Origin: Anthoceros angustus
Taxonomy: Eukaryota; Plantae; Anthocerotophyta
Direction: 5' to 3'
Length of the DNA: 64,000 bases
NCBI GenBank assembly: GCA_010909165.1
Contig: MU008165.1
Coordinates: forward strand, 744,001 to 808,000
Part shown: piece after piece, positions 2,281 to 30,552 of the stretch
Layout: each line of letters opens with the position of its first letter
How positions within the stretch are numbered: position 1 is the stretch's first letter
Made by a program: the position numbers and the translations under genes
Notes under the pieces: generated by a model
The model's input: only the letters and a program-made list of their open reading frames with translations
What the model was told of the DNA's origin: nothing
Database searches by the model: none

Positions 2281-3559
2281 GGCGGCGCGGCTGGTTCGGC
2301 CGATGTTCAGCTAACGGGTGCCCTCGCACACATCCCATAGTACTTGGATGCCGCCTTCTGCGGCGGTTGTGCCAGGAAGGGCGCCGGCACGCCGGCGCCC
2401 TTCCTCTCCTCCCATGCCTTCATACCCTGATATAAACCAGTCTGCCTGTGGGGTACCCAACTCCATGTGCTCCCTGCCTGCAGGCAATTCCGCTGCCTTG
2501 CTGCGACCCATGTCCTCATCTGGATTGGAAGGAATAGTGGGCACCAGCATGGATGCCCCAGGCATTATGGAAGCAAATTCCATTCTGTCGTCCTCAAGGG
2601 TGTTATCACCGTCCTCCTCCGACATTTCGTCATCTCGTGCGCTCTATAGGGCCATCCTCTTCACGAGGGTCCATACTGCCTCGTCCTCATCTCCTTCCAA
2701 TTCATAGTCGGATAGCCCAGCCACAGTCCTTCTAAAGACATCTCGGCGGTGATTGATGATAGAACTTGTAATCACCTCACATAAGCATCGATAAAAATTC
2801 CTTGCATTACGCCCAAGCGTTAGAAGTGCCGAAAAGTGTTAAGTGGATGCAATGATGTTCCAAAACTTCAAAATCAATGACTTCCAAAGACATACACTTA
2901 CAATCCTCGTGAAGAGCTTCCGGAATTTAAGAGGCATTCGTGGCTCGCACTTTTCTTGTGCAAACTGCTATGCTCAACACGAACACACTGTAGTCTTCCG
3001 ACCCCATTGGCAAAGCTTCAAACCCATAAGGCTTTGAAGTCACCAGCAGCTGAATATCCGGTTCTCCGTCCGCTTCTATCAAAGTTGCCCAGACCACATA
3101 CCCAGCCCTGGCTCTCTGATTCGGCAGAGCACCATTGTGGCCATAAATCCACAATTTCAGCATGGGTGTCCACACCACGTAAAGTCGCGGCCTCGTCTGG
3201 GGCCTCGGCCAGCGCCCGATTAGTTTTCGGGGTAGTGCGGTGAATTTTTAGAGAGAATCGGTCCTTTTACCATTTTCAGTATAGTAAAATTCATTACAAT
3301 ATAGTAGAAAACATGCCAAGTGGGGTGATATGATCTACCATCAAGGTGGAAAATAGAGCACTAGAGTAGAAAACATGGCGACCAAGTGAATACCGGTGCG
3401 TCTAGTAGAAGCTCATTCTAGAAATCCCACCAAAATCGCTAATCTGACAAAAACATTTTCTGTTAAATAATATTCATGCGGATCCGGGATATACAAAAAC
3501 CAACAAAGAACCTTTTCTTTGCGAGTTTCTATATCCGGAATGCATGAAATACAATTCAA

Positions 3560-6500
3560 CTAATGAAGAGTAAATAGATAGAGTGAACTCTGCTTCAACA
3601 AGAACCTACAAACAAAACCAAAATTAGCACCCAAACCGTAATTACGCTGCTAGTAAACACTAAAAATAAAAACATTGATACTCACCTTATTTTGGGAAAT
3701 TTCGTACAATTATACTGATTGAAAATGTAATTTTCACGACCACTTGGCTGATTGGTACTTGTACATTATCATAATTGGCAACCAATTGATGAAGGAGGAC
3801 TTGGGCGAAATTGACCATCTTCCGCAAGGTCACAACCTAAAACAACACAACCATTAATTTTCAATCTAGTAAACTGATTAATAAAAGCATAAAACTTACC
3901 AATCGGGATTTTCGCGAGATAGCGATTGAAATATCTCGAGGCACATCCTTACGCTCTGTCTTTCCCACGTAATCTCCGAACCTCTTGCGCTCTTTTCTGC
4001 GCTTGATTTCTCTTGATGCTTAATATGCTCTTGTCTCCTCTCCATTTCTCGCCTCTGAATCTCAAGGGCTTTCTCTCTTTGCTTAGAGACTCGTAATTCA
4101 AGCGCTTTTCGCCTCTGTCTCTCTATAAGTGCCTCCAAATCCTTTTTTGAAACTCCATTTCTGTTTCAATTTGTCATTCTCCAATTCCGTTCTCGGAGAT
4201 CTCGGCAAGCCGCTCAAAGCCACTTCCATTTCCATTTGCGATCCGCAGTCAATATATCAGGTGCTACCACGGCCACTTACACTGGTTAACCGGATGGTGA
4301 TCACACTCACTCACAATGCCCTCCAACGGAGGGGCCAGCATCAACTTCCTCGGTATCAATGTTGAAATGAGGACGATAAGCACTTACACACTAGTCGAAG
4401 GATTCACAATGCCAAGAAGAACACAATCGAAACTCCAAAATGAATGAAAACAACAAACAGCAAAGAATCAACCTTGTCAACATATGGAATTTTAGTAGAA
4501 CACCACATGGTTGGTCTGGTATCCATCTGGATGCCTTTGCTTTCAAGGTGCGCCAAAAACAAAAACCATATGATTAAAAAACTAACATGGCGGACTACAA
4601 CAAAGCAACTTCACAATACGAACTTCAAGAAAAGTGGACCACATGGTGCGGAAAAACTCGATTCGGTCCAACATTGTTCGTGCCTTTCATGATGAACAGG
4701 AGTGGCCACGAGGAAAGACACAAATCAAACAAGTCGGGACACAGTTTGACACAAGTCCCTACATACTTGATACAAATCTCAAACACTTACATTACTAACG
4801 TGTTGCACTTGCAAGGCGATCTTGGTGACTCGAAAATACTATTTCGAGTTACATTCAACACATTGACGGAAGAACACCCTTAAATCATCCGCATCCGATT
4901 GAGTTCTTCATTTAAAAGCTCGATAAGATCGTTCACGAGAACAAGAACTCTTGCGGTACTGTTTTGCTTGACGAGCGGTCATATCACAAAACATATAGAA
5001 CGTGAGCGAGCATACAAAGACTCAAATGTCACAAGCTTTCACAACATATTACCTTGAAAATCCGGCATCCGTTTTATGGCGGTCACACTTCTCCCATCGA
5101 GGGCACGAGCCATCGTCAAGCGTGTAATCATCGTTACAGCAGCTCTTATTGGTGTAATAGCCAACAAGCCCGGTGCTTGACCATGGTCTTCATAAACCTT
5201 TTGACATTCCTTTTGAAACACGAAGTTTTGCATACCAAGCTAGAACAAAAAAACAAGCGTTAGTAAATACAAACCACAAAACTCAAGCCCAATAAACCAA
5301 AAACTTACATTGATCTTGGGTTATCAATGGTTGAATTGAAGAGAAACCCTGAATTGACAAATTCTTGTCATGTGCGAGACCACTTGGGAGAGTGATCAAT
5401 ACTTTAAAGTTTCGATGGCGTCCACCGTAGATCTTGACCTTTTGAAATGCTCACTCGGTAATTCTTCATATCCACTTTGTAATTTTTGAATCCGTTCTTC
5501 ATACGCAAATGAGAGCGAGCAATCTGATACATCAAAACATCAAACAAAACAAGAAAACAAAGACTACACCTCTTGAACAAAAGGTCCGCTTTGAATCGAT
5601 GCAAATGAGAAGTCCCTAATGAGCGGGTTATGTAACTCTTCACCACCTCGAACTCCAAACTGGTCATGCAAAAATATGCACACACCAAAACAATATAAGC
5701 ATAAGGGCTCCGGGTTTAAGACCATAAATGAACAATCAAAGTGCACCCCAAAACCAACAATATTACCTTTTAGCCCCGCCCAAATGAGCATTGATGATCT
5801 ACGTGTGAGAATCGGTGCTCATCATCATCGAAATCAACTTCACCTCTTTTCGACATGACACAATCCCAAGGTCCTTGGATTTTCATGGGCAACCAACCGG
5901 TGCACAGGACCCATGGAAAATTCCATGAAACATGTTGATCAGGAACATCGAACCAAGCGGCTTTGGTTGGGATGCACTTGTTAAAATCGGTTAAACCCAC
6001 GAAAGAAAGACATCACCTGCACAAGTGAAGATCGCAATCGGTCATGTGAAGGAAAGTCGAACTATCAAAATCAACAAGTAAAAACATCACTACTTACGTT
6101 TACGAGAAAATCTCTGTTGTCCTTGATTCGAACTTGATGGAAAAAGGGTATCGAATAAGATTTAGATCCTTGAGGAATATCCTCAACAGCTATCCCATCC
6201 CTGACCCCACTCACTTTCATAAAGGCCACAGGCGACTTGACACGGTTATTGCCGTTTGGACCTATCCTCCCCACCACTCAAAGCATCATTCACTCCCTCT
6301 CGGGGGAGTCAAATCCTGCTCTCAAAATTTCTTCATCATCAATTTCCTCCATACCCATGGCAAAGTCATCTTGGGACCCGGCACTTTAGCCTCTCAAACA
6401 TATCGAGCACTTCTTGATCGGGGATGACTCGGTCGGGGAACCACAGGCATGGAAAAGCGCCCGGCACTGAGCATCTGTTCAACGGCACACAAATCTCTAG

Positions 6501-6900
6501 ACTCAGACAGGCTTTGGCCTCACAACCATGGGATCGTCGTTATCAAGAAATCATTCTCCCCACAAACCTGGACCTCTCTCGGACATGGGACATAGTTAGT
6601 AATCTCGCAAGAGGACCTTCAACCAATGCCACGGTCAGTGTCCACCCTTCTCCTCTTACACAAAACTCACGTCGAGCATCCTTCTTGGATGAGAAGTGCC
6701 TTGGCGGTTTAGGAATGCCTTTTTGGAACTAAATATGTTCCTTCCACCAACACACCATCAACTTTACCATCATCCTGCGGTGGATGAGTTGCATGTGGAG
6801 CGGTGACACGCTTCAGTGTAGCCATGACGGCCGAGGACCCTTGCTTCCGGTCCAAGGCCCTGGGTTTCCTTTTAGGTGCCATCGCAAGCCACCATTAGAG
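3560..6900 (-). pseudogene. Crypton-like (DUF3504-type) tyrosine recombinase, copy A, intron-containing and frameshifted, with C-terminal coiled-coil exon
   Basis: Motifs in order: 'VEDIP..IPFFHQVRIKDN' (6071-6277), 'QFGVRGGEELHN' (first catalytic Arg, ~5640), 'FKNYKVD', frameshifted 'TNKSCRVTMITRLTMA', 'GRSVTGHKTDAGFSR' then intron then 'YDRS' (catalytic Tyr, ~4980). Coiled-coil exon at 3896-4138. Confidence 0.75.
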
Positions 6901-8809
6901 TGGACAAAAACACACCTAAAGAACAAACAAAACCACAACAAAAAACACACTTACGTGGTGTTAACTTCAAATGAACTTCCTGAAGGGTCTAACTGATTAT
7001 AAAACAATTTAAGACGAAGAGGGTGTGGGGATATAGAGACATTCATTGAATCTACACATTGTTATTGATCCTCCACTTTATGTTAGTAGAGAGAAAACTC
7101 CTTTCCTTATACCCACACACTTAGACCCTTTTGCCAATAATATCAAAAAACAAAAGAAAAAATTAGGCGACAAGAGACACATACTAGGAGATTCAATGGA
7201 CACTCAGCGAAGGTTATCACGATTCACAGACGGACGAGTAGAATGTTGGCGAGCCAACCCTTCACACGATGACAATGCCTACACTTTGATGGATTAGATA
7301 ACTTAAAAGTGGTAGCAAAACACAAACGAAGGCACATGCCATCAAAAAACTCATCAAATTTGTTGACATACCGGATCAAGGTTACAAACAAATTTCCTCC
7401 GGGCCAGCACCAAAACAAAACAAAATAAGAACAAGAATGCACGCTTTGCGGGCTTAAAGACAACGATAAAGAAGCACAAACGTGATGCAAAGGATGATAA
7501 ATGTAAAACAAACAAACTCAGATTCAGACACTGTTTACCAACACTCTTACACTAGAAAATCTTGAAATTACTTCTCGAGCCAAAGACAATGAAAAACTAA
7601 TACTCAAGAATCTAGCGGCATTTTTCAAAAGCGACATCTTCATAAAAAGATTACTAAACAAAGTTCATTGGTAAAACAAAATCCCATATGTCGCCACATA
7701 GACGAAAACATGGCATCAAAAGCAGGCGAAGGTAAGAACACACGAGGAAAGCAACCATCAGACCGAAACTTTACACAACTTGGTCACAAACCATATTAAG
7801 GCGTGAAAAAAAAAGCTACGATGGCGAAACAAATCAAAGTGACTAAGCGACAGAGACAAAATGGCGGCAAGCAAAACAACCAAGCCATGGAACCAGGCAT
7901 CAAGCGAGAGACAAAAAGTCACTTGAATAAACGAACAAGTTATAGCAGCGTTCTGAAGGTGAAAAACAAGCGTGAAGGTGAAAGAATCGCACATAAGCAG
8001 ACCTAAACAAAACTTAGCTTGGAAGTAACACAAGCGAACCTCTCGAGACAAAGCGAATCTGGTCGATTTCAAAAAAAGCAACATACACACGATGGCGTCA
8101 CAAAACAAGTCAACAAGAAGTACAGAAACGAATCACAAGAACCAAGCTTATACAAAGTTAAATGCTTAAACGACACACACATACGAGCGTCACGGCAAAA
8201 CAAGAACACAGAGGTCATCGAGACACACAAGAAAACAAGCGAGATGCAAGCGTGCAAGCCATGACCACCGACAACAAGCGAGCAGATAAAGGTCTTCCAA
8301 CAATCAAACAAGCGACCGTTAAGAAGGTCAAAAAGAACGCGAATCACTCATGGAGACATGACAACCTTCAACTAGATGCAACAATAAGGCTCAAAACGCC
8401 AGATACGCTTGTCGTTTCACAAAACGAAGCAGACTCCGTGGCGGCATCAACAGCAAAACAAAATAAACAAAGACAACCTGACGGCAATCAACCTAGCGAA
8501 ATCGGTAAAACCATCATAGCAAAGTAGTCATTCCTATGATTTAGGAATCGCATACGGAAAAACAACATCAAGCACGCAGAAAAAAAACGCGATACAAAAA
8601 GCCACCCTGCGAAGGTAAAAAAACACTTCGAAGACGGAACAAAAAACACGACCATACAGCGCGACACCATGTAGCAAAACAACACCAAAACCGCACAAAA
8701 CAACAAAGAAAGAAACAATAGGCGAAACAACAGAAAATAACGTAAAAATGGACGGACTTCAAAGAAGGCGGGGCCTTAACCTTTAAGCAGAGAAACCTCA
8801 ACTCGTGCC

Positions 8810-9330
8810 AATCAACCTTGGCCTTGAGAGCAACAAGCCTAACCCGCAAGGACACCTTGACCGGGCTTGGCCTTGAAAGAACCACAGGACCAGCAACACC
8901 TTGGCCTTGAACAATCTCGAGACCTTGGCCTTTGAGCGAAGGTGGAAAGCCTTAGCCTTGAAGGACACGAAAGCATTGGCCAAAACTTACAAAAGCCTAG
9001 AAGCCTAGCCTAGAACACCTTGGCCTTCAAAGAAGGCTACAGACTAAGCGACCCGAGAGAAATCACTTTGGCTGCGAAACTAGAACTAGACAACTCATGG
9101 ACTTGAACAAGCGGAAGCATGCAGGCATAGGCCATGGCCCTCTGACAAGAGACACAGCCTTGGAAGCAGAGAGGAAGACCTTGGCCAGCGAAACTAAAAA
9201 GGCGAACAAGCGCGAGGCTTGGACGAAAGCCACCTCGGCCTCAAAACAGGAATGAAAAGACCTCCGCTTTGGAGAAGCCATTTATATAGGCCACAAACCC
9301 TAAACACTTCTCCCTCTGGCCGCCGTTCTC
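8810..9330 (+). promoter_or_regulatory. Putative Pol II promoter: ~7 CCTTGGCCTT-like motifs, TATATA (9283-9288), telo-box AAACCCTAAA (9295-9304) and pyrimidine patch
   Basis: Motifs read directly. The order repeats-TATA-telo-box-CT-rich is typical of plant promoters; direction toward gene Q is inferred. Confidence 0.5.
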
Positions 9331-10399
9331 TCTACCGGTTGAATTAACCAAACCTCCTAAGATTGGGCGGATTCCAACCTCGTGGGTTCGCCATTCGCCG
9401 CCGCTCTCAACCAAACCTAGGTTCTTGATTCCAAACCTAGCCTAACCGCACCAAACCTAATCTCCGAACCCGGGTGGCACGTTCAACCACGCAGTGCCAC
9501 GCCACGCCCGTCGAACCATCTAAGTTTTGAGTTTCAGCAGCACACGGGTTTGTTCGCCGCCCAACACGCCCGGCCTCGCGTAGGATGTGCGGTCGGTGGC
9601 CGGGTTACGATCGGTGTTCGACAGTGCCTTTGCTCCAAGTTTGGCTCTGTCCTCGGGGAAGGTCGGCGCAATCGGCTCCACTTCCTTCATCTGATCGCCC
9701 ACCACGTACCAGCTGGTTTGATCGCATCGCATAGTTCTTGATTCCATCCCTAGGTGGGTACACCAATTTGCACTCGATCTGCCACAATCGATCACTCTTT
9801 TGCGCTCATCCTGGCATCCGACTTACGCTTAGCTCCACCGCCCATAAGACAACAAAGTCTCTTTTTGGCGTCCTTAAAGTCTGACGTCAAGCCCACTAAA
9901 AGTGTCGGTTCTCCTTACTTTGTTGAAGTCCTTTGCCCACCCACTATCTTGTGGGCTCAACCATTGCTAGTGCATGAGCTATAATCACTGTGAGTTTGCC
10001 ATTGAGAAGCCTTTCACAAGTGATATCATTGTGAAACTCACCAAAAAGACCCTTCAAGTTCCAGCGCCAAAAGAGGTCCTCAGACACATTACGCTCTGGT
10101 AGACAAACTGACCTTATTACCTTGGTTGTTTCCTTTCAAAGTCGGGCTAATGCAGATCACCCGCAAGCTAGCAAGTGATCGACAGTCTTGTCTTTGATCG
10201 TTTATCTTGGATTAATCTCGGTTGCCTTTCACCTAGGTCACCTCGTTTACACGCATGGTGAAGCGGTCCGACCACAAGAACTCCTGCGTAAGTCCTTCCT
10301 TCAAGCGCTCTTGAAGCCATCACGCATGCGAGAATTCCTCATGGCATGGCGTTGCACAACATGACTTGCCATTTGATCGGACGCAAGCGATGCATTTGA

Positions 10400-12690
10400 C
10401 CCGTAAGCGTGTGCGGGCGCTACGCCGCGCTGATCTCAACCTTCGCTGCGATCGTATCGTGCACATCTTCCTTTCTTTTCGTTTCTAGATCGCTTTTGCG
10501 GCGTACCAACAAGCGCTTCCGTTTAATGCGGTTGTCGTTTAATATTGAGCCGCCGCTCTGCGACTTCCGTTTTCATCATCTTCAAGGTAAGATTCGATAT
10601 CAAAAGCTCCTTAAGATCGGCGGTTTGAATTTACTTAGAGTCGCATGTGTCAACGCGTCACATGTTGTGATGAGTTCTAACAAACTAATCACTCCGTGTG
10701 TAGACGGCAAAGAATCTTGAGTAGGCATCACGCCCGCCTCGTACCATAGAACACATCAAGTGGTCGCTAACATTCCGTTTTTGTGTGAAATCAGGTTATC
10801 TGAGGTTGGTATCAATTTGTTTTCCGCTCGTAGAAGTAACAATGTGCATCAAATAATGCCATCTTATGGTGACATAAGCGAATATCACCACATGGTGGCG
10901 TATCACGTGGTGATAGCATGTTGAAGTCACATGCGTGGCTTTGCATGGCCCTTAGCATGCTGCACAACATCGAGCATGTTGCGGGCACTAGATGTTTCAA
11001 AAGTTGAAGCATGAGCATTGTTTGTGTATTGTTGACGGCGATGCTTTTATTTGAGAATGGCATCCGAGAATGAGCAACGATGAAATGGTCGAAATCCAAG
11101 AAGGTAATGATCATTTACGCCTCGCTAAATCCATTTTAGGTTGATAAATCCATGGCTAAAATGATTTTTCTCCGAGCGATCACAATAGTAGACCAACAAA
11201 CCTTAATGGCGATCGAACAATCATGTTCCCACCCATGGGGATCCGGATATGATGGCTGAAGTTGAAATCCCTCTCATTGAGATACGAAAAGTTGAGAAAG
11301 GTAGTACATTGCAATTATAATTGAACTTTCCATCAACATTTCTAATTGGATATATTTGATACAGTACTCACGGAGCACACTATGTTCACATCAATGGACA
11401 AAAAGGACTTGCAGCTCCTTTGCCAGGTGCACCTCAATTGGAAAAAATTAAAAAGGTAAAGACTTGATTCAACTTCTCTAGAACTATAGAACAAAAATAT
11501 AGGTATCAACTTACAATGGTTGTATATGGTTAGGATATTAAGAAGAATCTCCGAACAACTCAATTAGAGTTGGAAACAATGACTCGGTCCGAGGTTTAAT
11601 GGACATCGGATCTCAATTCGATCGATTTTGGAGGTAAACAACAAACATTTATTATATATGTATTTGTTTACATTAGAAGTACTAATATATTTTGTTTACA
11701 GTCTTCTTGAACAAGTAGCTGCAGCTAAGGAAATTAAGGAAAAATAGAAGCAATGGATGATAAAATCAACAACACGACCATCTCACATCGGTAATTGCTA
11801 TTGTATATTTGTAAATAATTAAATATATTTGTAACTAGTATTTTACTAATCATTCTGTTTTCAAAGGACAAAAGAGGAAAAAGGTGAGTCAAGATAATGC
11901 ACCGTATGGACCATCGAAGGAATTTGTCGACTTTGGAAAATGGATGGATAACTTTCGTATCCACAAGTCTTCCAAGATTTTAAAAATAGATATGTTCCCA
12001 TTTGGGAACATAGCCTCAAAGATCGACCAATCTGCAATGAAGATGGGTCGACAACCCTAGAGCGGTACATGGAGATCCGAAAAGTAAGTGTTATCGGTTT
12101 GTATTGTTTTAATAGTTTATTTGAATCGGTTTATGTAGTACTAATGAATATTTTGTGTTTTGGTAATGTAGAAATATCAGCCATTGAAAATAAGGAGCTA
12201 AAACCACGGACTTGTTGACTCGATGGAAGATCCGAAACTACAAAAACATTCAAAAGGTTAGTTGTAACAATTTTGATGTAAACAAGGAAAATATTGATAT
12301 TCGTATTTACCAAATATGCAAATTCTAACGTTGATACCTTTGCGAGCGTCCAATCACATTTCCGTAGTGTGGGAAATCTTCACAGCCATTGCCTCACATT
12401 AGTGAGAAAGGTATTCGAGCAAGATCTTCTTCGACTTGAAATGGAGGTAAAATATTAACTCCTTTTTGTTTGTAGTTATCGAAGAATCAAAAGGAGTTGT
12501 TTGCACTATTTGAGGTTAGTATATCATATTTACGATGGTGAAATTATATATCTACGATGTTGACATTTACCATTGCTGCGAAATATTCCGTTTGAAATTT
12601 TTGAAATGATTAACTTTCTATCTGGACCGTACAATGAACAAAGAAGAAGTATTACGAAGGCAGGATCCGAAATCGCGGTGTACACCCTTC
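10400..12690 (+). pseudogene. Gene 'Q' left copy: multi-exon gene of unknown function with many short AT-rich introns
   Basis: Repeated GT donors (about 10587, 11103, 11301, 11456, 11634, 11791, 12084, 12447) with AG acceptors. Exon peptides such as 'FVDFGKWMDNFRYPQVFQDFKNRYVPIWEHSLKDRPICNEDGS' match the minus-strand 'FTEFGKWMSNFQYPPLFK...IWEHSLKEQVQPILNEDGS' (17408-17656). Confidence 0.55.
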
Positions 12691-12699
12691 AACGCTGCG

Positions 12700-13430
12700 A
12701 GAAAGTTAGAAAAGAGAAATGCCAAAACCACGAAAGACAAGCGTGGCAGTAGTGAAAACTACGAAGTGCGAAGGTGAAAACTACGAAAGAGAGAAAAAAG
12801 ACTTCTAACTTGGTTGCACAAGGCAACAATTCTAAAGATGCGCAGGACCTCGGCTCATACCGGTGCGAAGTCGTGGCAGCGTCTCGGCTGACCTCGGCGC
12901 TCCCTTCGCCCGAGGCGAGCGGCTCGTCGGGCACGGCCCTGAAACGGTCTCGGCCTAGCGGCCTCGACCGTTCTCGTATAACCTTCGGCGTCCGTTCTAA
13001 TGTCTTCTTGACTCTGCGCTCGCTGTCACAAGCAGAGTCCTTCTCCCGGAGAATTGTCTCATCAATGTAGTGTGTGTGCGCAATTGAGCGATCTCCTCAA
13101 ACGTAAGGTGAAGATTAGAATCCGCGGTACGCTTTGTGACTTGGCCATCTCGATTTCCCTCCGCTGCTCCTTTGTACTCACCTTTGACCAGCAGGATCCA
13201 CGAGTTCGAGGGCGCATCCTGTTTGTCCGGGCTCGTTGCTTATGAAAGAATGCTCACAGATTGGAACAAGTGGCTCGAACTTTGGTGTGCATCCACTCCA
13301 CGCAGCTCCTTTGCGTGCACTGCCTTCTTCCTTTTGGTCTCTTACGGCGTTTTGGTTTTGTCTACATGCGGGGTTTCTTCTTCGATCACTGCCAATTCCT
13401 TCTTCTTGCGCCCACTTGCCATAGCTGCTG
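12700..13430 (-). pseudogene. ORF 'Z': ~240-codon minus-strand frame with two internal stops, unknown function
   Basis: Frame reads MASGRKKELAVIEEETPHVDK...LTFEEIAQLRTHYIDETILREKDS...PDEPLASGEGSAEV and joins the listed ORF 12689-12934. A GC-rich promoter-like stretch lies at 13540-13700. Confidence 0.35.
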
Positions 13431-13849
13431 CACAGAAGCAGCGGTTGATTACGGTGACTACGGTTCTCCCTCAATGCAAAAAGGAGGTGAGGATGCCGCA
13501 GCACTTTGCGAAGTCACCCAGCGGCGCAATTGACAAAAATCTGACAAGCGGCGTGGGCGGGCCGTCCGGCGTTCCGGAAGTGGGCGCAACTCGCGAGGCT
13601 TGGTGAACGGTGTAGTCCGTGATGGGCGCTCCATTACGGTAAGGTTGAGGCCTAAAAGGTCGGGGCGGGGTTAAAAGCTGCGAGCGGTGATGGCCGCCAC
13701 GCGTTTAGGGTGTCCATTTTTACGGGAACCTAATTTTCGGCACCGCTTGCTTTGCCATGGTTTCGTAAAGCAGGTGCCCATGTTTTCCAGGCGTGGTGTT
13801 ACGTACTGCCTACATTAAATGATTCCGATACCAGCAGCAAAAGCATGAC

Positions 13850-14860
13850 ATTTATGTCACTTGACAAATGGCCGGCGTGGGATCCGACACTTGATAGGTA
13901 GATCTTCTCCAACGGTGAATGCTGGAAATATTCGGCTGAGCATCCGGTACTTGTTCTCCGATGTCTCATACTAATTTGCCCTCCTCCTTGTTTGTTGCTC
14001 TGGTTGGGTGGCTCGTTCGCGTTCGCGAGGCGTGAACGTCACACCATGCTCCACTCCACCCATACCGATGAGGATCTGAGGTAGCTTCAAAGCGATTGCT
14101 GCTCCTTCAATGTAGTTTGTATCCATTGGAGTCGTTGTTCGTAGTGGGTGTCATGCGGATCGGCAGTGCGGATGGGAGGAACTTGTCCATCTTGGTAATG
14201 TCTTGCACTCAACACGCATGCAGGCGAAAGGAGCATCCGGTGATCTATTTCCCATAAGCTTGCAAACTTTGCGAGCGGTAGGCGACCACATTCGAAGTGC
14301 TCTTTGTTGAAAAGCTACATGTTTCATAATTAAATGCGTGCGACCGGATGTTTTCCCTGTAAAATCAGCGGGGCATGCGGGTTTGCAATGGTAATCATCG
14401 CTGTCGGGCTGGATGACGATGAGCTTCACCTTATTGGCAAACATGCTTGCGAGCTCGAGTGCGAAGGACTCATCACCGCGTGCACCCCCTATGTGCCACC
14501 GGCCTCGGAACTTGAACTTGTATGCGGCTATGGAACTTAGCCCCAAAGCCACGAGGAGATGCCGCCCGCCCTCAGAAGTGAGCCATCAACGGGCAATGAG
14601 AGGTCTCTTTCGCCCTCCGTGTGTAGTTTTGGGTGCATCGGGGGAGCCGGATATTGTTGGCGACGACAACGTTCCCCACCCTCGATTCACCTCACGGGCT
14701 GCGGTGTACATATCATCCGAAGCCAATGGCCAGACATTGCGCCCTATGACGAGCTTGCGTTTCGTGAGAGCGGACGGGCGTCACGGCGAGCAGTCGGCCG
14801 TGAGGCGAGACAGTTCTAGGCGTCGCCCGGCAGCGTCCGTTCCACTGGCGTGGGAGGCGG
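13850..14860 (-). pseudogene. ORF 'P' copy 1, unknown function, frameshifted
   Basis: ORF 14151-14552 (KFKFRGRWHIGGAR...KVKLIVIQPDSDDYHCKPACP...MKHVAFQQRAL); the same peptide recurs in copies 2 and 3. Confidence 0.42.
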
Positions 14861-16660: not shown

Positions 16661-16759
16661 ACCACCCGGCTTATATGTCATTTCTCTCTCTCTTCTGATA
16701 ACTTCCCTTCACTCATCATTTTTGTTTTTCAATCCTTTTACACAATAAAAGGATTATCT

Positions 16760-18100: not shown

Positions 18101-18104
18101 AAGG

Positions 18105-19059: not shown

Positions 19060-20960
19060 ATAAAAGGATTATCTTAAATCCTTTTGTCGTAATTAGGGTG
19101 TAATCAAAATAGTTTTGGTTAAATTCACACATATTCTATTGGAGTAGATGGAGTGTAAAATGGTTCGTTGTCTTCTCTTGAATAGTACTTTTTAGCTGCT
19201 TTTGTATGGTCCGATAAATGTATAATCATTTGAATATTTCATCAAGCGAGAATATTTACAATTTAAACCATTGTAATTTCATATAAAACTTATCTATTTT
19301 TAACTTTAGTACTCACCTCAAAGAGTGAAAACAACTCGTTTTGATTCTCATAACTACAAACAAAAAGTAAAAGTAATTAGTCATTTACCTCCATTTCAAT
19401 TCGGAGAAGATCTTTCTTTGCATATACCTTTTAGACAAGCGTTAAACACGTCTTTGTGAAGATTCCCCACTGCGGAAATGTGATCGTATGTTACGAAGAA
19501 ACATAAACATTAGAATTTTTTGGAATGCAAGCGGATATTACCTTTCAAGCGATGTACCTTTTGAATATTTTCGTTGTCTCCGGTTCTTCCATGAGAGACA
19601 ACAAGTGCATCGTTTTCAACTCCTTATTTTCAATTGCTGCTATCTACGCATTCAATGCATACGAATTACATTACATAGAATTGTAATGAAAATAATAGAG
19701 AAAAGAAAGTTATTTGACTTACTTGCTTGGATCATCTGTCTTTGCTTTCGAATGTTGGGTTGGACCCATCTTCATTCAAGATGAATGTACTTGCTCTTTT
19801 AGACTATGCTCCCAAATTGCGGCATACTTAGTTTTAAAGTCTTGAAAAGTGGTGGATATTGAAAATTGCTCATCCACTTTCCAAACTCGGTGAACTCAAG
19901 TGACCCGTAAGTTGGTCCATCCTCCTTGAAGTCATCAATTTTCTCTTTTTGCACGATCAAAACCAAAATCATTACTTTCTTAAACCAAAATCATATTAAT
20001 CCAAATTATACATACATTTTGTATACACGATTGGAGATGGCTTGTCAATGTTGTTGTCAATCTCATCGACTTTGTCCTTTATATTTTTGACTTGTTTTCC
20101 GGCGTACGTAGTTATAGAAGGTAAATGTGAAGACAAAGAAGGTATGAATGTAATTTGATTACCTCGATCTTGCTGGATTGAACTTTGATATCCCTCAACA
20201 TTGTTTGCATTGAAAATCGGTGTCCATTAAACCTTTCCACAAGTGTATCGTTTCGGCTCAATTGTTGTTGAAGGTTCTTTTTGATATCCTGAGAGATAAA
20301 TTTAGGGTTAAGATTTTGGATTTGAGCATACTTAGATGAAGTTTATGAAATTAAGAGCATTGCTTACCTTCTTTATCTTATTCAAGCTGGCGGGCATCTC
20401 GCAAAGATGCTTAAGGTCTTGTTTGTCCATGAGAGAACATTGTGTGCTCATGAGGCGCAACCCGGGTTTTGTTAGACTCGACCGAGAACATACAGGACTA
20501 ACAATCATTTTTCACGAATACCTTTTCTCGATCTTTCTTATCTCCGGTGGTGGTTCAAACTGCGTTAGCGTCATATCTGGATCCCCATGGGTGGGAAGTA
20601 ATTTGTAGTGGCGCTCACGGTGGCGTCATGTAGTTCTTGTCTGCGGGGGTTGACACAATAAATATTAGTAAAAGTAAAAGCAAAGTAAAAACGTAAATCA
20701 ACAAGTACCTTCTTGGATTTGAAAATCGTTATTGCTTTGTTTCGATTCCATCACATTCAAAGCGAAAGCCATCGAACATGATCAAGTCAAACGCATCAAC
20801 GCGTCGGCGTCAAAAACACAAGGCGCGCCGCGCGCAAAAGCGACATTGAGCAAGGCATTGCTTACGTCCACGAAGCGTTGCTTCACGAAACCAATTGTTC
20901 GTGATCACGCATCAATTTTGTTAAAAATGTTCACCAATCATAAAATAGAAGGAAGCAATA
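19060..20960 (-). pseudogene. Gene Q, most complete right-arm copy
   Basis: Continues 5' past the duplication junction. TTCCCACCCATGGGGATCC and the donor context CCAAGAAG|GT are shared with the left copy (11226, 11103). Confidence 0.55.
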
Positions 20961-21504: not shown

Positions 21505-22375
21505 GGACAAACCAGTGAGAAAAGAATAGTGAAACAATGTGAGAAAACAAAAGAGCAACATTAGTAACTCACGGTCACTCGGTAGCGTGCAGGACACAGA
21601 AACAAGCATGTGACGGGCAGGTGGAACAAAGGAGCACCACAACCCACAAGAGAACATTTCCGGCTAACTCCTTGGCGGTGCAAAGGCACAGCGGTCGGAT
21701 CGGACCAAAAGTGGCGGGGCGGAGAGGACGATGTGGGTCGGTGGGCTCAATAGCCACGTGGACGTGAAGGCGTGACACCATAAGAGGCGTGCGTGAGTTC
21801 GAAGGGGAGTCAAAAACCTGAAGTGATGGCTGAATCAACGGAAAGGAGCGAAGGCGTGTGGGTTCTCGAGCTTGAGGTTCTCCAGCGTCGGTTGAGCTTG
21901 AACCCGCTCCCAAAAACTCGAGAAGTCGGGCGCAGCAGGCGGAGGACCCTGTGGATGCCTGAGTGAGAAAGGAAGAGGAGCCAGCGGGACAAACCAGTGA
22001 GAAAAGAATAGTGAAACATTGGAGCAAAACTAGAGCAACATAGCAAGTAACTCTGGCTCGGCGGTAGTGATGAGACAGAGTGGCAGGCGGCAAAAGCACC
22101 ACAACCCACAAGAGGACATTTCAACTCCTGGCGGTGCAAGGCTAAGCGTGGTGGATGGCCAGCGGAAGGCGGGCGGTGTGGGTGTGAAGCTCAATAACGG
22201 TGGACGTGCTGCCCAAGGCGTGACACCATACAGGCGGGTATGAGTTGAAGCGTCAAAAACCGGTGATCTGAATCAAGAGCACGGCGTCAAGGGTTCTGAT
22301 TCGGTTCTCCAGCGTGGTTGGAGCTTGAACCCAGCTCCCTTCGTGAGGCTAAGGACCTTGATGGAATGCGGCGCC
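21505..22375. repeat. ~480-bp tandem duplication between gene Q and the recombinase
   Basis: GGACAAACCAGTGAGAAAAGAATAGTGAAACA at 21505 and 21987; GGTTCTCCAGCGT.GTTG.AGCTTGAACCC at about 21877 and 22303. Confidence 0.85.
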
Positions 22376-24699
22376 ATAGCGAGCGAGATTGGCTCCAGGC
22401 GTTTAGCGCCATAGCGTAGAGATGGGCGGTGTGGAAGGAAGCGGCTTGAGATGCGTCGTGGGAGAAGGGTAGGATCGGCAATAGTTATGTTGTTTAAGTA
22501 GGCCTTAAGGGTTCTTTCTTCTTTGTGCGGCCAGGATGTCGGGCTTGATAGCCTTTGAGGTTCGGAGGCTAGGTTTGGAGGGTCAGCTAGGTTTGGAAGT
22601 AGGCGGCGTTGGCCATCGTGTTCCAGGTAGGTTTGGTATTGAGTTCGAAGTCTAGGTTTGGAAATTTTGAATTAGGTTTGGTGTCGCGAGAAACCTAGGA
22701 TTTCAGTCTAGGTTCTGTTCACTTTTAGCCATTCTTTTCCGCTCTGCTCGCTCTCCCTTAGGTTATTTGCTCATTGTTTGCCTTCTTTGTGGTTTCCGCC
22801 TTCTCTTGTTTGCTCTTGCTGGTGCTCTTGCGTTGTCTGTTGCCATGGTGGTTTGTTTTCACCAGAGTGCGTTCCGTGCGTTTTTGTTTTCTTCTGCGTT
22901 TGCTTACTTGATTTCCTCGTTTTTAAATATTTGTCTTTGTGTCTATGGCTTTACTTTTTTGCTGATTAGTGTCTGTGTTTGCCTTCTTTGTGGTTTCCGC
23001 CTTCTCTTTCTTTGTCATCGAAAACCTCTTACGCTCTTTCTTTGTATGTTTGTCGACCTTTGCTTTGCATTGTGGCGGCGCTCGTTTTGTCTTGGTTCCT
23101 TCTTCGTGTTGTGCTCGATTTCGCTCTAGTTCATGGTTTCCTTTTAGTATTTGTTGGCTTGTTATGTCATTTTGTATGACTAAGGCTATTGGTTGTCGTC
23201 TTGTCGTTGTTTATTTGCATGTGTTTTGGGGCATTGCTTCCTCGTATTAGGTTTGGAGTCGTTCATCGGTTTTCGTTTTCTCATCAGCGTGTATCCCTGT
23301 TCGTTGCCGATGGGAAATAATCAGGAGGAGGTGACCGTGGGAAGACAATGTGCTCGGTTTTGGTAACTTTGTATCCGAGGTTTATCGCTTGCCGTTCTTT
23401 AGTGTTGCTCTCATTGTTTGTCTTTTCGCTTTGTTTGGTCGGTTCCATGTTATTCGTGTTTCTTGATGTTCCTCTTGCTTGTTGTCTTGGTATGTATTTA
23501 TTAGGCTACTTTACGGATATTCATAATGTTTATGGTCTTGGTGTGTGCACGTTGACAATTGGAGTTTGGTGTTGCGTTTGATTTTGGTTGAAGGCGATCA
23601 TGAATTTGGTAGGTGTGTTCTTACATCGTATACATTTATTTGAAGTAAACTTGGTGTCACTCATTGGAGTGTCAACTTGCGATGTCGTCGTCTTACTTAT
23701 TGTGTCTTCATCTATGTATTGGTGTTTTACTCAACCGTGTACCATAAGGTATGATCACTTTTCTGTTATGTTTTTCATTTCTTTGTGGATCGTCAAGGTT
23801 TCTAACTCTTTGTTTTACTCAACGATGTCATGTAGGAGGTGGCATGCACTTAAAGTTCTTATCACCCGTCACAATTTGTTCTTGTTAGCATATAGATAAC
23901 CTCATTTTGATTTTATCTGCTCATCTCTCTTAAGAGTCGTTCTTAGTTGACTTTTTACATTATTGTCGATAATTTGTTGTGTAGATTGCCCCGTTTGCTG
24001 TAGATTTGGTAATCAGCTTATGTGTAATAGTGTGCATTGAAAAGTGAATCTGGATTGGGCATGCTGTATTGTGTGCATGTCTTGGAGCTTAATCTTATAG
24101 ACCGGTTTTTATGTGCAGGTATTGAAGTGTGCAACGTTTCGGAGGGTTTGCCTCCGAACATCTTTGGATGTTTGATTCCAGTCTAGAAATATGTATTGTT
24201 GTGTGGCATGGATGAGCCTGTGTTGTCCAATGAGCAGTTGATTGTTTTACTTGTGTGGTCTGATGTATATGTTGTACATCTAGTGTTGTTTGTACGTCTA
24301 ACTCTTGTTGTACTTGAAAAAAGGGTTTTCACTTTATTTTTCCAATATGTGGTGTATTTTTAGACGTTCTATGTGTCATCCTTAAGAAAGTGGAAGGAAT
24401 AACAACTCTAACAATGTCTAGCCCCAAGTTGTGTTTTGGGGCCATATCCTCTCTTGTCTAGGCACGATAATCAACTTTTAGACCTTCCAGGTTCTCATCC
24501 GGGCCGGTTCAAGGCATGTGAGTTCTTTCTTTTCGTTTATCTCGTTATGTTGTTTGTACATCTCAACGTTGTTCGATGACTTCTCCGGTGTTGCGATGGC
24601 TCTAAAAGAAAACCCTCTGGGAAAAAGCGAGCACCTTTCAAGTCATGTCCAAGCCGTACACTCGACAACGTGTTAAAACAGCCATCGTTCACACCCACC

Positions 24700-27600
24700 C
24701 TCTGCAGGATGATGGTAAAGTTTGATGTCCTTGTGCATAGTGAGGGACATATTTGGTGCCGAAAAGTCCATTCCCAAAGGCACTTTTCATCCAAGGAGGA
24801 TGCCCGTCTTCTGAATTTGCTCGGAAGAAGAAGGGTTGACACCGACCTGCCCTTGGTGGAGGGTCCCTTGTCGAGATTACTAACTATTGTCTGCTTCGAG
24901 AGAGGTTAAGTTTGTTGGTGAGAATGTCCATCGATTACTCGATTCCATGGTCCTTTCGCGGCATGCCTGATCTCGAAATGGGCTGTGGGCTGCTCCGTGC
25001 GAGATAAGTCTCTGAATTCCTTTCACCGTGAGTTTTCCATTCCATGTCGCTCCCCGAACACAGTTATCACGACCGAGTGTATTGATATGTTTGAGAGAAT
25101 GAGGTCTGCTGATCCCGAGGATGATTTTGCTATGGGCATGGAAGAAATTGAAGATGAGGCCCATTTTAGGGACCAAGGGTTTGACCCTCGATTCCAGGGA
25201 GCCTGAATGATGCAATGAGTGGTGGTGAGGACAAGTCCAACGCCAAAATAATTGGTGCCGAGTCGTCTTAAGTCTTTCATGAAAGTGAGTGGTGTGAGGG
25301 GTTGGGATAGTGCAATAGAGGACATTCCTCACAAGGACTTGAACCTTATATTGATACCGTTTTCCACCAAGTTCGAACTTAAAAGACAACTCAAGATTCT
25401 CTCTGAAGCGTAAGTCTTCATCCCTTTCTTATTCCGTTGTGTTTCTTTTCATTTTATGTGCTGATTTCAGATATTGGTGAGTTGATGTCCTTCTTCGAGG
25501 GTTCAATCGCATTTTGATAAGGAAGTGTGTTCGAGCAAAGCCGTCTTGGGTCCGATGTGCCGTGATCAATATGTTTCACGGCGTGTTCAATGGTTGTCGG
25601 TGCACTTGTTGCTTCCATGAAAATCAGAAGACCTTGGTATAGTATCGTGCGAAGGTGGTGGCGATATCGATGATGATGAGGCAATTCTTGCCACGGTGAC
25701 CATCAATGTTCTTTTGGGGCGAAAAAGGTTTGTTCGATTCCTAGCTTCTTGTGTGCATTTTGCACTCTTGTTGTTGCTTCTAACGATTGATGTTTTACGA
25801 ATAGGTGTGCATATTTTGCATGAATCGTTTGAGATGCGTGGCGGGAGGAATTGCACAACTTGTCGAGGACTTCTCATTCTCTTGGATTCGGGCGTTTTAT
25901 GCGATCGTTTGTCCATGTTTTGATTGATGCTTTGTTGTGTGGTAATACTCTCCGTGTATGATACCTTGTTTGTGTTGTAATACCCTCCTTGTGTTGCCTC
26001 GCAGATCGAGGAGCGACATTCAAGAATTACAAAGTTGATATGCGCAACTACGGAGAGCACTTAGGCCAAAAGTGAAAAACTATGAGGTGGATGTTATTCA
26101 AACATTTAAAGCCGTCATTGACCATTGTCCAAAGTGGACTGCAAATGACAAGAATATATCTATCCAAGGGTTTCTTTTCAATTCTCCCATCGATAATCCA
26201 AGATCGAATGTAAGTATCTTTTGATAAGGGTTCTAGGTTTGTGTTCCATTGGACGTGCTAACTTTAATTTTCTCTGTGAGTAGGCTTGGTATGCAAAACT
26301 CCGGGTATCCAAAGGAATGCTCTCAAAATATATGAAGACAATGGCAGAAGCAGCTGGTCTTGATGGGTATTACACGAACAAGAGCTGTCGTGTAACGATG
26401 ATTACGCGGCTGACCATGGCTCAGGTGCCCTCAGATGCTGGCAGAAGCGTCACTGGCCACAAAACTGATGCTGGATTTTCAAGGTAGGATCTATTTGTTG
26501 ATGCCGTCTGTAACTTGTTGATGCCTTCTATTGACATGATGTGTTCTCACAGACTGTGGACTTTGCAGGTATGACCGTTCGGGCAAGCAAAAGCGGTATG
26601 ACGGGGTTCTAGTTCACGTGAAAGAAGATCATACAATGAGTTGCTCAATGAAGAACTCATCGGATGCGGGATGACTTGCGGGTGTGCTTCCGTCGATTGT
26701 TGTCAATGTGACTCGGATATAGTTTTTCCACTGAAGATGTAAGTATTTTCTACCATGAAGGAGTGATTTTTTTGGAGAAGATTATGATTCTACTAAAGGA
26801 TGCTGATGTTAAGAATTTGTTGTGCATAGGCTTGTGCTCAATGTTGCCTACAAGTTCAGAGCGTAAGCATTCCATGAGTCGTTTTGGTTTTACGAAGGTT
26901 TGTTTCTTTTAATCTTTTCTTGATTGGTATTTGATTCTTTTTGTTGCTTTTTGTTGCAGTGTTGCCAATCTACCACCCTGCTATCCACCATGAAAGGGCC
27001 CTTTGTCGACGGTTAGTATCTTCTGTTGTATTTTCGTCCTCCTTGCTGGTTTGCACCCAATATTTCATGCAATGTTTGTTGTTGTTTTGTTCCATTGTGA
27101 AGCTTTGGGTCCAAGTGCGAAGTAGTGTTAAAGATCTTGATTGACAGCAGACCAACTCACAGGTGTATTCAACATCGACATGTTGAAAAGGTTAAGTGTA
27201 AAGGTGGTTTAAGTTTTATCCTTCATTCTCTTATTGTGTTTGTCGATTCTATGTTTCTTTGGCGGTATTAGCCCCACCACTAAAGATCTTTTGACCACTA
27301 GTTTGTGAGCATTTGGTCCTCATTCAACATTGATGGTGCCCGAGTGTGGTGGAGGTGATGCCTCCTCGCTTGGAGGCCTGTGTAAGCATTTTATGAGTCG
27401 TTTTGGTGTCGAAGGTTTGTTTCTTTTCTTCTTTTCGATTGGTATTTGACTTTTTGTTGCTTTTTGTTGCAGTGTTGCCAATTACCACCCTTGCTATCCA
27501 CCATGAAAGCGGGGCCCTTTGTCAAGACTGGACCGGTTAGTATCTTCTGTTGTATTTTGGTTCTCCTTGCTGGTTTGCACCCAATATTTCATACAATGTT

Positions 27601-28545
27601 TGTTGTTGTTTGCGTTCCAGCATTGTGAAGCTGTCAAGTGCGAAGTAGTGTTAAAGATCTTGATTGACAAGCAGACCAACTCGGGTGTATTCAACATCGA
27701 CATGTTGAAAAGGTTTGTAAAGGTGGTTTAAGTTTCATCCTTCATTCTCTTATTGTGTTTGTCGATTCTATGTTTGGCGGTATTAGCCCCACCACTAGTG
27801 TGTGATTTGTGAGCATTTCGGTTCCTCATTTCAACATTGATGGTGCCACGAGTGTGGTGGAGGTGATGCCTCCTCGATTGGCCTGTGCCAAGTCATTGTG
27901 GTGAGACTTGACTGGAAGTGCAGGAAGGATTGTGAGACACCTATAGCTTTGGATATGGTAGAGCGGCATGGGGTTGAGAAGGGTGGTTCAAGCGGGTTTG
28001 AGCGTCTTGAGATTACGAGAAAGGGAGAATGGGGAGAATCGAGAAAGGGAATTTCAACGGCAGATTTAGAATCATTGATTGATTGCAATGCGCAAGGGTC
28101 ATACAACCGAGTTTCCAAGCAGAGAAAGCTTTGGAGATCCAAAGGAGAAAAATGTCGAGGCAAGAGTATTTCAAACAAGAGGAAAAACTCAAGCAAGAAG
28201 GAGCAACAGAAATGCGAAGATTGCGTGGGAAAACGTGACAAACTATTGACAATGTTTACATCCTCAGCCTCCACTTCCATCCATGGAAAACCATATAAAG
28301 TCGTAAGTTGATTTAATTGTTCCCTTGATTTTGATCGCTAATTTTACTTTAGTAGACTAAGACGGTAATGTTTGATTAGGTTCTCAACTTTCGTGAAGAT
28401 GAAGAATTTCTCCAAAGCCCCAGTTCATCAACACGGCAAACTATGATAATGTTGGACAAGTTGCCCGGTTAAACCAAGTGGTCTTGGAAACTATGTCTTC
28501 AATCTCTACAATTATGATCAATTTTCCAAAATAAGGTGGGAATCT
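24700..28545 (+). pseudogene. Crypton-like (DUF3504-type) tyrosine recombinase, copy B, multi-exon, with C-terminal coiled-coil exon
   Basis: 'AIEDIPHKDLNLILIPF' (~25310-25365), frameshifted 'MRGGRELHNL' (~25835), 'AWYAKLRVSKGMLSKYMKTMAEAAGLDGYYTNKSCRVTMITRLTMAQVPSDAGRSVTGHKTDAGFSR' (26284-26483), GT-AG intron 26484-26568, then 'YDRS' with Tyr at 26570-26572. This fits the R...HxxR...H...Y layout of tyrosine recombinases and the Crypton 'WY...AG...TN.S.R.T...L....TGH' pattern. Confidence 0.8.
26865..27890. repeat. ~520-bp tandem duplication in the 3' part of recombinase copy B
   Basis: AAGCATT..ATGAGTCGTTTTGG at 26865 and 27384; CAACATTGATGGTGCC..GAGTGTGGTGGAGGTGATGCCTCCTCG at about 27325 and 27833. 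Confidence 0.88.
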
Positions 28546-28859
28546 TTCTAATGAACTTTTCTTTGCGTCTATTCAATCATCTAATTGGTTACAAGCCTAA
28601 TTTACTTTGTATATGTAGATTTGTAATTTGAATAAGGAGGATCAACTATTCTGGTATTTTCTCTATTTTTTACATTATTTTGAATTCATGCAATTCGGAT
28701 ATGAACTTTGCAAAGATGATATTTCTTTGTTGGTTTTTGTATATCACGGATCCGCATGAATGGTATAATGAAGATGTTTCTTGCCAGATTAGCGATTGTG
28801 TTGGAATTACTAGGCCACCCTGTAGATTACAATCTACCATGGTATTTCAGGCTTCACTT

Positions 28860-29040
28860 GCTATTCACTTGGCTGATCATTCTTTACCCTCTTGTTCTAG
28901 TTTTGATTTGGACGGTAAAATGTTTCCATTCATCAGTCTACGTTTTTTACTCTATATTCATTTGGTTGATCCATTCTTTACCCTCCTATTCTAGTTTTGA
29001 CTTGGATGGTAAAATGTTTCCATCCATCAGTCTATGCTTT
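28860..29040. repeat. ~95-bp tandem duplication
   Basis: CATTCTTTACCCTC..TTCTAGTTTTGA.TTGGA.GGTAAAATGTTTCCAT.CATCAGTCTA occurs twice (about 28879 and 28972). Confidence 0.8.
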
Positions 29041-29140
29041 CTAATCTATTGTTACAATTTTCCACCTTATTGGTAAAAAATTTTTTATCAATGAAAAATT
29101 CTCTCTCTTCGTTTTTACCCTTTTGGCCTGAAAAAAACCA

Positions 29141-30552
29141 TGGGCGTCGAGGCCCCAAGCGAGGCAGCGACTTTACGTTTCAAACACGGTGGTGTCTCCT
29201 TGAAGAAGGCCCGGGGCGGACACTGATTACGGAGGATTTCCGTAAACCGTGTTGCAACAAAGTATGTATTCAACGACTTTCGAGGAAGGTTTCCGGAAGA
29301 GGCAAAGGTTCCTTAGGTTGGGAAGGTGCGGCGAGACATTCCTAGAGACCCTTAAGACGACCATGGTTCGAATGGCAAAGACAAAAGTCTGTACTTTCAC
29401 GAAGGCACGGTTCCAATCAAGTATTGCTAAATCCTTGAAGGTGTATTGCATAGGGTCGGAAAGGTGCGAGAGATGAAGGCTGATACTTGAATTCACCATG
29501 GGATTGTAGCAAGCCAAGCCCCGGGTGAAATCCTCTCATGCATTGGGCGCTATTGCATGGATGGATGCAACATTTTTACGCAATTAGCGAGCGGTGCCTA
29601 ATGTTGAAGTCTACAATCTTCGACACTTTCACCAAACTAGAAGTGTGGACACAATACAAATGTGGCATGGAGCAAAAGGGCTGTATATTTCGTATGCTTA
29701 CTTTACGAGACTATGGGAGGCAGAACTTCAAGCGTGAAGATACCCAAATCAATCGGTTTTCAACATGTTCTCTTTCGCCGGTCTAAGTTCAACATTGGAA
29801 CCTGGATCGGCAGACGGATCAAGGTAAGCTCATCGCTCCACGTTTTTCGGCATGGTATAAAGAGGGTGAAAGGTTAGCGTGGCAATGGTGTAGGCCATCG
29901 ATATCTAACGGTGGGCGTTGTGATAGTGGAGGTTGAACCTTGGTGAGGTACAACCGGTTGACCCTGCGGAGAAGGCGGGCGGTACGACGCCATCGGGTGG
30001 GGAGAGGCGAGGAGGGCGCGCATGCAGCGCCCTCGGGGTCGTGGGAGGGAGAGGAGGAGGCGCCCGTCGCGCCCTCATGGAATTGAGGGTACGTGGGGAG
30101 GCGGCAACATGCGGTGGACCTAAACCCTAAAGGAGCTTGGGAGGCCGGCATGCCACATCCCTAATTGAGGCGGTAGGGGAGGCGGCGGGCAGCCCGCCCT
30201 TACCGATGATTTGCTGGATCGCAGGCCCGCCCGGTGGATCCCTAGGTTGTTGTTAGCATGACCCTTCGAGGGTTGCCATCATGCTATTGCCCCTTTGCCC
30301 CTACGGGTGACGATCGTCTAGACTCCAGCCTGATAGTAGAGTCGACCCCTTCATCCATTGCATCGGAAATGCGGCGTTTGGGGGGAGGCCCGTTGGTTGG
30401 TCCTGGTTATCGCATGACGTTATATTTCATGGATGGACACTGACATGATGTTTGGTTGAAGGGCAGATATATATCGGGACGCGTTGAACAAACATCGCAT
30501 AAAGCTTATGGAGGAGCGGAAGAAGTTGACAAAACATCGAACGAAAGGATAC
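29141..30552 (+). pseudogene. Sola-like (DUF7869-type) DDE/D transposase, 5' part, interrupted by the Gypsy insertion
   Basis: 'CCNKVCIQR', 'YISYAYFTRLW', frameshifted 'VKIPK.NRFSTC', putative intron 29824-30466, then 'IYRDALNKHRIKLMEERKKLTKHRTKGY', which continues in frame into 45803 onward. Confidence 0.6.

Follow-up and report, generated by a model that had tools for sequence, protein, structure and literature searches.

Crypton DNA transposons were reportedly described by Goodwin in 2003. Elements of this type are known from fungi, oomycetes, diatoms and animals; they have been described as lacking terminal inverted repeats and as having short (4-6 bp) direct repeats at their ends, and some CryptonS elements carry a second protein gene, which encodes a C48 peptidase (Kojima and Jurka 2011, PMC3212892). 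DUF3504 elements of the CryptonA (Glomhopper) type were recently reported from Glomeromycota (PMC13465315). No description of Cryptons from land plants was found in the literature searched. Here, a 64,000-nt stretch of the genome of Anthoceros angustus (assembly GCA_010909165.1, contig MU008165.1, positions 744,001 to 808,000 of the forward strand), referred to below as the window and numbered from its first nucleotide, was analyzed because of two copies of an intron-rich tyrosine recombinase (YR) gene, each of which faces a second multi-exon gene designated Q. The two copies are interpreted, at a probability that we place just short of even, as two old and decayed insertions of one two-gene Crypton-like unit that face opposite ways.

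The locus was compared with several described systems. As in Cryptons, the window unit and its relatives in ferns and a liverwort encode a YR without a reverse transcriptase (RT), the gene has introns, and the protein is related to DUF3504; the difference is that the fern and liverwort relatives have inverted repeats of 27-35 nt and a 5' hairpin. Unlike the CryptonS elements with a peptidase gene, the window unit has the orphan Q as its second gene, on the opposite strand and 4 kb from YR. The fern and liverwort elements share with the window unit the same protein family, the introns, and a TTACGT-type 3' end, but they are compact (3.2-4.4 kb), have one gene, are near-identical across chromosomes, and contain neither Q nor the CCAAACCTA array that lies between YR and Q in the window. 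The Starships of fungi, whose Captain recombinase belongs to DUF3435, likewise have a YR at one end of a multi-gene unit. In contrast, the YR family considered here has no DUF3435 match except for a weak one (0.0034) in the DUF3504-type protein P0025, and the window unit is at most about 11 kb long with one companion gene; cargo turnover is unsupported, and the candidate cargo open reading frames (ORFs) are not conserved. A tyrosine recombinase is also encoded by the YR retrotransposons DIRS and Ngaro, the former with inverted terminal repeats, but RT, RNase H, and methyltransferase were not found anywhere in the arms of the window locus in Pfam scans that included the ORFs flanking YR.

Layout, ends and divergence of the two arms

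Self-comparison of the window using BLAST revealed inverted homology, at 69-71% identity, between two arms (Table 1). Positions 3418-3840, 4834-5491, and 5779-6789 of the left arm pair with positions 28813-28376, 26727-26018, and 25718-24693 of the right arm, respectively, and this bore out the proposal of a sequence-only reading that the window holds two diverged, intron-rich YR copies, the spans of which had been placed about right. Further inward, 11226-11641 pairs with 20597-20185, and 11928-12635 pairs with three tandem units on the opposite strand, between 13874 and 20426. The same reading had set Q head-to-head with both YR copies, and this also held: Q is a real multi-exon gene, and its start codon is located 4.0-4.4 kb from that of YR in both arms. 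The order of end motif, YR, A/C-rich tract, CCAAACCTA array, Q, and a GC-rich segment designated G is colinear and mirrored in the two arms, which are adjacent and have no clearly unrelated DNA between them. The conserved unit is about 10-11 kb in length and consists of the YR gene, a spacer of about 4 kb, Q on the opposite strand, and the GC-rich tail.

The divergence between the arms was examined by exon, intron, and codon position. The YR exons are 67-79% identical, whereas the introns between them are 51-59% identical. The blocks of Q are mostly 65-90% identical (E4 and E5 just 53-57%), and its introns are 33-56% identical, save for one 28-nt intron at 82%. At these levels of identity, the neutral sites between the arms are saturated. 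Differences at the first, second, and third codon positions amounted to 27/165, 36/167, and 66/166 for YR (third-position excess, p=2e-6) and to 47/211, 46/209, and 85/210 for Q (p=9e-6); when the Q excess was compared with a null in which the best of three frames was taken for each exon, the p value was 0.023. The method of Nei and Gojobori yielded dN of 0.18-0.21, dS of 1.2-1.4, and dN/dS of 0.14 for YR, and dN of 0.25, dS of 1.2-1.3, and dN/dS of 0.20 for Q. The other two frames of the same alignments served as a control and gave ratios of 0.76-1.6. At the level of codons, YR and Q were thus shown to have diverged under purifying selection by approximately the same amount. The dN/dS ratio and the codon-position pattern indicate that Q was once a real coding gene, and the equal, mainly synonymous divergence points to units descended from lineages that had both genes in working order and in linkage.

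The homology of the arms extends outward to a common end motif and stops at 3178 on the left and at 29177 on the right. Both arms end in ...GACTTTACGT, which is a TTACGT end as found in the elements of the liverwort Calypogeia fissa. Despite the saturation of neutral sites, the terminal 30 nt are identical at 27 positions, and the 18-nt core of the end motif was detected at these two sites alone within the 64 kb, even when 3 mismatches were allowed. Positions 3178 and 29177 therefore look like true element termini.

The spacers between YR and Q do not align between the arms, and a sensitive BLASTN search found nothing in common apart from the island formed by the motif array. They are nevertheless built alike, with an A/C-rich tract of about 2 kb beside the start of YR, a CCAAACCTA cluster, about 2 kb of ordinary sequence, and Q. 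Nine exact copies of CCAAACCTA are present in the window, all of them within the two spacers and in mirrored orientation. Analysis with Tandem Repeats Finder indicated that the spacers are not based on tandem repeats, and, among the ORF pieces from the spacers and the G units, the 40 longest contained no Pfam domain, hence no RT or RNase H. A telo-box-like sequence, AAACCCTAA, is located at 9290-9310, about 100 nt before the left CCAAACCTA array. A strong strand asymmetry, mirrored between the arms, was observed at 4000-10000 and 22000-28000: the strand that is sense for YR is rich in G and T throughout the gene and the 2-kb tract beside it. Possible causes are a long T-rich 5' intron or untranslated region of the YR transcript, or strand-biased C-to-T decay.

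Table 1. Positions of the features of the window and of the comparison loci (locus handles L001 to L005 precede the coordinates of the latter).
Feature	Position	Strand	Remarks
Left arm	3178-~13870		YR gene and Q
Right arm	29177-~13874		YR gene and Q; inverted relative to left arm
Left outer end motif	3177..3207	-	Ends ...GCGACTTTACGT
Right outer end motif	29148..29178	+	Matches left end
Left YR block	3178..7140	-	Pseudogene; ATG 6882; C-terminal motif near 3820-3879; ~600 nt 3' flank
Right YR block	24320..29178	+	Pseudogene; ATG 24596; C-terminal blocks to ~28540
Right YR exons	~25833-25900 (Arg-I box), 26004-26057 (KNYKVD), 26060-26212, 26287-26484, 26570-26640	+	Mapped with guidance from fern and liverwort proteins
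Left A/C-rich tract	6950..9300	+	AT skew +0.24 to +0.29; GC skew -0.12 to -0.14; no Pfam match
Right A/C-rich tract	22700..24500	-	Mirrors left tract; does not align with it
Left CCAAACCTA array	9411..9459	+	Three exact copies (9411, 9431, 9451), 20 nt apart
Right CCAAACCTA array	22570..22681	-	Five exact copies; sixth at 23248
Q, left copy	11226-12650	+	About nine exon-like blocks with GT-AG borders; ATG 11249; pseudogene
Q, right full copy	20598-19310	-	Same blocks; likely ATG 20574; in unit 3; pseudogene
Segment G, after left Q	12651..13873	+	GC-rich; weak colinear similarity to right-arm G units; no Pfam match
Right-arm tandem Q+G units	~13874-15635, 15636-18105, 18106-20598	-	Only the last has Q from E1
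Adiantum YR element loci	L001:9702-13004; L003:8793-12090; L004:14074-17263		
Calypogeia YR element loci	L002:9477-13857; L005:9454-13023		L002 has an extra insertion of ~1 kb

The recombinase and its relatives in ferns and a liverwort

The identity of YR was assessed from its motifs, from profile and sequence searches, and from a predicted structure. The catalytic order R...HxxR...H/W...Y is present, and consists of the RGGEEL box (5576-5671 in the left copy), NKSCR, TGHK, and the Tyr of RYDR, which follows a phase-2 intron. The open exon at 26287-26484 contains the NKSCR...TGHK signature. A HMMER search with YR against 1.84 billion representative proteins produced 97 matches, none above 49% identity, and the best named full-length relatives were hypothetical proteins from two ferns, Adiantum capillus-veneris and A. 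nelumboides, and from the liverwort C. fissa. A family HMM matched exon 26287-26484 with E=9e-29. The catalytic exon is 41-43% identical to the fern and liverwort proteins (KAI5071645, KAI5063052, and KAI5068402; CAM6105270), and the motifs KNYKVD, RGG-E-L, NKS-R, TGHK, and RYD are common to YR and these proteins. R201, H224, and Y233 are invariant in alignment A7. The His of the HxxR motif is replaced in the plant family, by Lys in the window copy (NKSCR, 26380-26400) and the fern protein (NKSLR) and by Arg in the liverwort protein (NRSGR); the DUF3504 relatives retain NHSLR at this motif (alignments A6 and A7).

The results of the protein-profile searches with YR were mixed. Exon 26287-26484 gave a weak match to Pfam Phage_integrase (PF00589) that was short of the cut-off (E=0.0085), and an Atlas search scored 0.95 to Phage_integrase clusters; Pfam DUF3504 (PF12012), the other profile proposed for this check, was matched by neither the window pieces nor the plant relatives. 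The plant relatives themselves miss the thresholds of both profiles. Among the relatives, P0005, P0077, and P0025 pass the Phage_integrase threshold, and P0008, P0006, P0034, and P0073 have no match. The relationship to DUF3504 is visible through BLAST alone (proteins P0077, P0055, and P0070): alignments of the plant proteins to proteins that have both DUF3504 and Phage_integrase span 230-440 residues, with 20-29% identity, and E values of 1e-11 to 1e-17 were obtained against one of these, P0077. A profile search of the PDB with YR returned nothing real. The AlphaFold (AF2) model of YR had a pLDDT of 62 and no significant fold match in Foldseek, the top rows of which included Tn1549 integrase, Cre, and the integron integrase IntI at weak E values of 0.9-3.5. 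The proposed Crypton-like character of the enzyme was upheld, and its assignment as a Crypton/DUF3504-like tyrosine recombinase in a land-plant transposable element nest is supported.

Both YR copies are pseudogenes, as judged from their lesions. The alignable YR blocks are 4.0 kb (left) and 4.9 kb (right) in length. In the left copy, the KNYKVD exon is interrupted by in-frame stops, the catalytic exon (5042-5239) is broken across three frames, and the AG splice acceptor ahead of the Tyr exon has been lost; the Arg-I exon at 5576-5671 is intact. The right copy has frameshifts after codon 2, near 25845 (-1), near 25859 (-4), and near 26058-26062 (-1). Its catalytic and Tyr exons are open, and a phase-2 GT...AG intron follows exon 26287-26484, with the tyrosine exon RYDRSGK beginning at 26570. 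The right block also contains an internal tandem duplication of 0.5 kb (26863-27382 / 27382-27887) and a 94-nt repeat present twice at 28862-29049.

The loci of the relatives provided defined elements for comparison. In A. capillus-veneris, three loci on three chromosomes have in common a block of 3.2-3.3 kb at 98% identity, and the YR gene is located inside the block, which extends beyond it by 185-300 nt on the upstream side and by about 550 nt on the downstream side. These elements have a 27-nt inverted repeat near both ends and a palindrome or 114-nt hairpin at the 5' end, and at L004 a second copy of the 20-nt left-end sequence follows the right end, as at a circle junction or tandem site. 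The gene model KAI5068402 (P0017; L004:10001-16663) joins PPR repeats to the YR ORF, and this fusion is probably an annotation merge across the insertion. In C. fissa, two loci have 3.6-4.4 kb in common at 88-94% identity; their inverted repeat is 35 nt long (ACGTAA... / ...TTACGT), and the 5' end has a hairpin of about 155 nt. The 5' inverted repeat of the relatives is located 150-370 nt upstream of the ATG. Given their near-identical dispersed copies and sharp ends, the fern and liverwort elements look recently mobile. No CCAAACCTA array was found within 10 kb at the five loci, and a tBLASTn comparison of all ORF pieces of the arms with these loci recovered YR exons and no Q.

Gene Q, the GC-rich tail and the rest of the window

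The blocks of Q are separated by poorly conserved AT-rich stretches, and two further partial copies of Q are located in the tandem units of the right arm. In the left copy, a 4-nt insertion shifts the frame in E3, and E4 and E6 are frameshifted too; the right copy in unit 3 has a stop in E7. On this evidence, both full copies of Q are pseudogenes. Scans of the Q pieces detected no Pfam domain, and an exact scan of metagenomes for a conserved Q motif gave 0 matches. Q was also looked for in the public run X1, which is small and DNA-like, and 13% of the sampled words of 10900-13900 were present in it. X1 was the one DNA-like run recovered among the public sequencing runs, and no RNA run containing the sequence was found. 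A total of 295 short variant contigs of X1 were placed on 8900-14800, all within 11264-12642, with introns included and no splice joints; the spacer received no contigs, and the GC-rich tail received essentially none (depth of about 1.5 at 12840-13233). The X1 data are contigs, not reads, and inform on presence and multiplicity rather than on copy number. The X1 organism seems to have Q by itself, as a repeat family or in a tandem array.

The right arm is longer than the left because the unit composed of Q and the GC-rich tail has been locally duplicated in tandem. The tandem units are 1.7-2.4 kb in length, and their junctions differ from each other, which fits unequal exchange and not repeated insertion. 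A common 3' end of the LINE or Helitron type, with 5'-truncation, was considered for these units and rejected on the same grounds.

Two further ORFs, P and Z, had been proposed as genes belonging to the right copy. The candidates, taken as the long ORFs at 14395-14913 (+) and 14154-14585 (-), lie within a GC-rich tandem unit. They have many indels between units that are not multiples of three and hence break the frame, their differences are flat across codon positions, and no Pfam match was found. P and Z are accordingly not regarded as genes in view of these patterns.

The remainder of the window is a transposon nest. A gypsy-type long terminal repeat (LTR) retrotransposon is located at 30553-45796; its LTR-like direct repeats are unusually long (30553-34916 and 41148-45796; 82-88% identical), its interior encodes a zinc knuckle, an aspartic protease, and RNase H, and a small tandem repeat is present inside it at 42000-42675. 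Copia-type fragments with integrase, an SH3-like domain, and gag were found on both strands at 48289-53228 and 63403-63906, and a protein search with copia sequence gave a best named match at only 47% (Adiantum). The GC-rich segment at 1639-2432 contains a 134-nt tandem repeat (1992-2125 / 2143-2275) as well as long ORFs that overlap on the two strands, and it has no Pfam match. Rfam and tRNA scans of the window identified no RNA genes.

Origin of the two units

As tentatively reconstructed, the unit would be a two-gene variant of the compact fern and liverwort transposon family and, by analogy with the Crypton model, would move through recombinase-mediated excision and integration. Lineages of the unit would have diverged while active, two members would have inserted into the transposon nest, facing opposite ways, before becoming inactive, and the right copy would later have been lengthened through local tandem duplication. 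Q may, as a guess, have partnered the recombinase in an accessory or DNA-binding role, with both genes expressed from one two-way promoter region that the CCAAACCTA array would mark. That a Crypton-like lineage in a non-seed land plant gained the orphan, intron-rich Q, which was kept by purifying selection and expressed divergently from the CCAAACCTA spacer, is a possibility that we entertain with some doubt. Four independent insertions of two unrelated repeats were also considered and rejected, since they would not yield equal dS, equal spacing, and a common motif array.

Several observations weigh against two insertions of one two-gene unit. There are just two copies in the window, side by side and both dead, and comparison of 60-nt ends, fuzzy motif searches, and shared k-mers across the window revealed no second terminus or inverted terminal repeat, nor was any target-site duplication or direct terminal repeat found in the window. 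Q is without a detectable homologue or domain in Pfam, in a word-index protein search, and in two Atlas searches, no Q is present within 10 kb of YR at the five fern and liverwort loci, and the elements at these loci are single-gene elements of 3.2-4.4 kb. At a dS of 1.2, moreover, the equal divergence of YR and Q may be partly saturation. Two further points against the two-gene unit also fit a different account, in which a compact single-gene Crypton-like element of about 4-5 kb integrated site-specifically on two occasions, each time at one and the same position in a Q-bearing repeat represented by two diverged inverted copies: about 250 nt upstream of the ATG of YR, the homology of the arms fades, and Q-like sequence appears to be amplified in the X1 organism without the rest of the unit, so that the Q block is high-copy alone. 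This is a serious rival, albeit an unlikely one. The use of specific target sites is common among tyrosine recombinases, the relatives are compact elements whose ends are defined, and the sizes of the two YR blocks are in keeping with such an element; yet YR and Q would then have the same dS by coincidence, identical insertion sites would be needed although the neutral sequence of the copies is saturated, neither a 5' terminus nor an inverted repeat is seen upstream of the YR genes, and the spacer beside Q is not high-copy in X1 either.

The adjacent, mirrored arrangement of the arms and their common outer boundary, which any duplication would be expected to produce, are what an ancient in-place inverted segmental duplication would leave behind, had a YR-derived gene and its neighbour Q long been functional as host genes before they decayed. 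We consider this improbable. With neutral sites saturated, an in-place duplicate of such age is unlikely to have kept its layout, since at a dS of about 1.2 both the order and the spacer lengths would have had to persist for very long in a transposon nest; YR is transposon-like in the relatives, the outer end matches the TTACGT terminus of the Calypogeia transposon, and all four genes would have had to die. The sequence-only reading had gone further and taken the locus for a Starship-like unit of at least 16 kb with a fixed set of cargo genes, and one giant element, 16-26 kb in size and moved whole by the recombinase, either with long inverted arms or with P and Z as cargo, would explain why the same motif occurs in inverted orientation at ends 26 kb apart. 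Such an element is very improbable: the arms differ at saturated neutral sites and so are not recent repeats of one element, the extra length is due to local tandem duplication, the ORFs of P and Z are not conserved, the ends are not flanked by a target-site duplication, and the relatives are compact.

The copies in the window are dead, and the locus itself is thus without present function. If two insertions of a two-gene unit are the correct explanation, the unit would be a two-gene eukaryotic YR DNA transposon whose relatives differ from the described Cryptons in having terminal inverted repeats as well as a hairpin at the 5' end. The comparison loci provide the first defined boundaries for the plant family, namely compact elements with inverted repeats and a hairpin, and the window locus adds candidates for a partner gene with a clear signature of selection, for a terminal motif, and for an array with a regulatory or binding role. 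The ends and accessory genes of Cryptons are poorly known, and this locus, together with its relatives, makes the mobility of the family and the role of Q testable.

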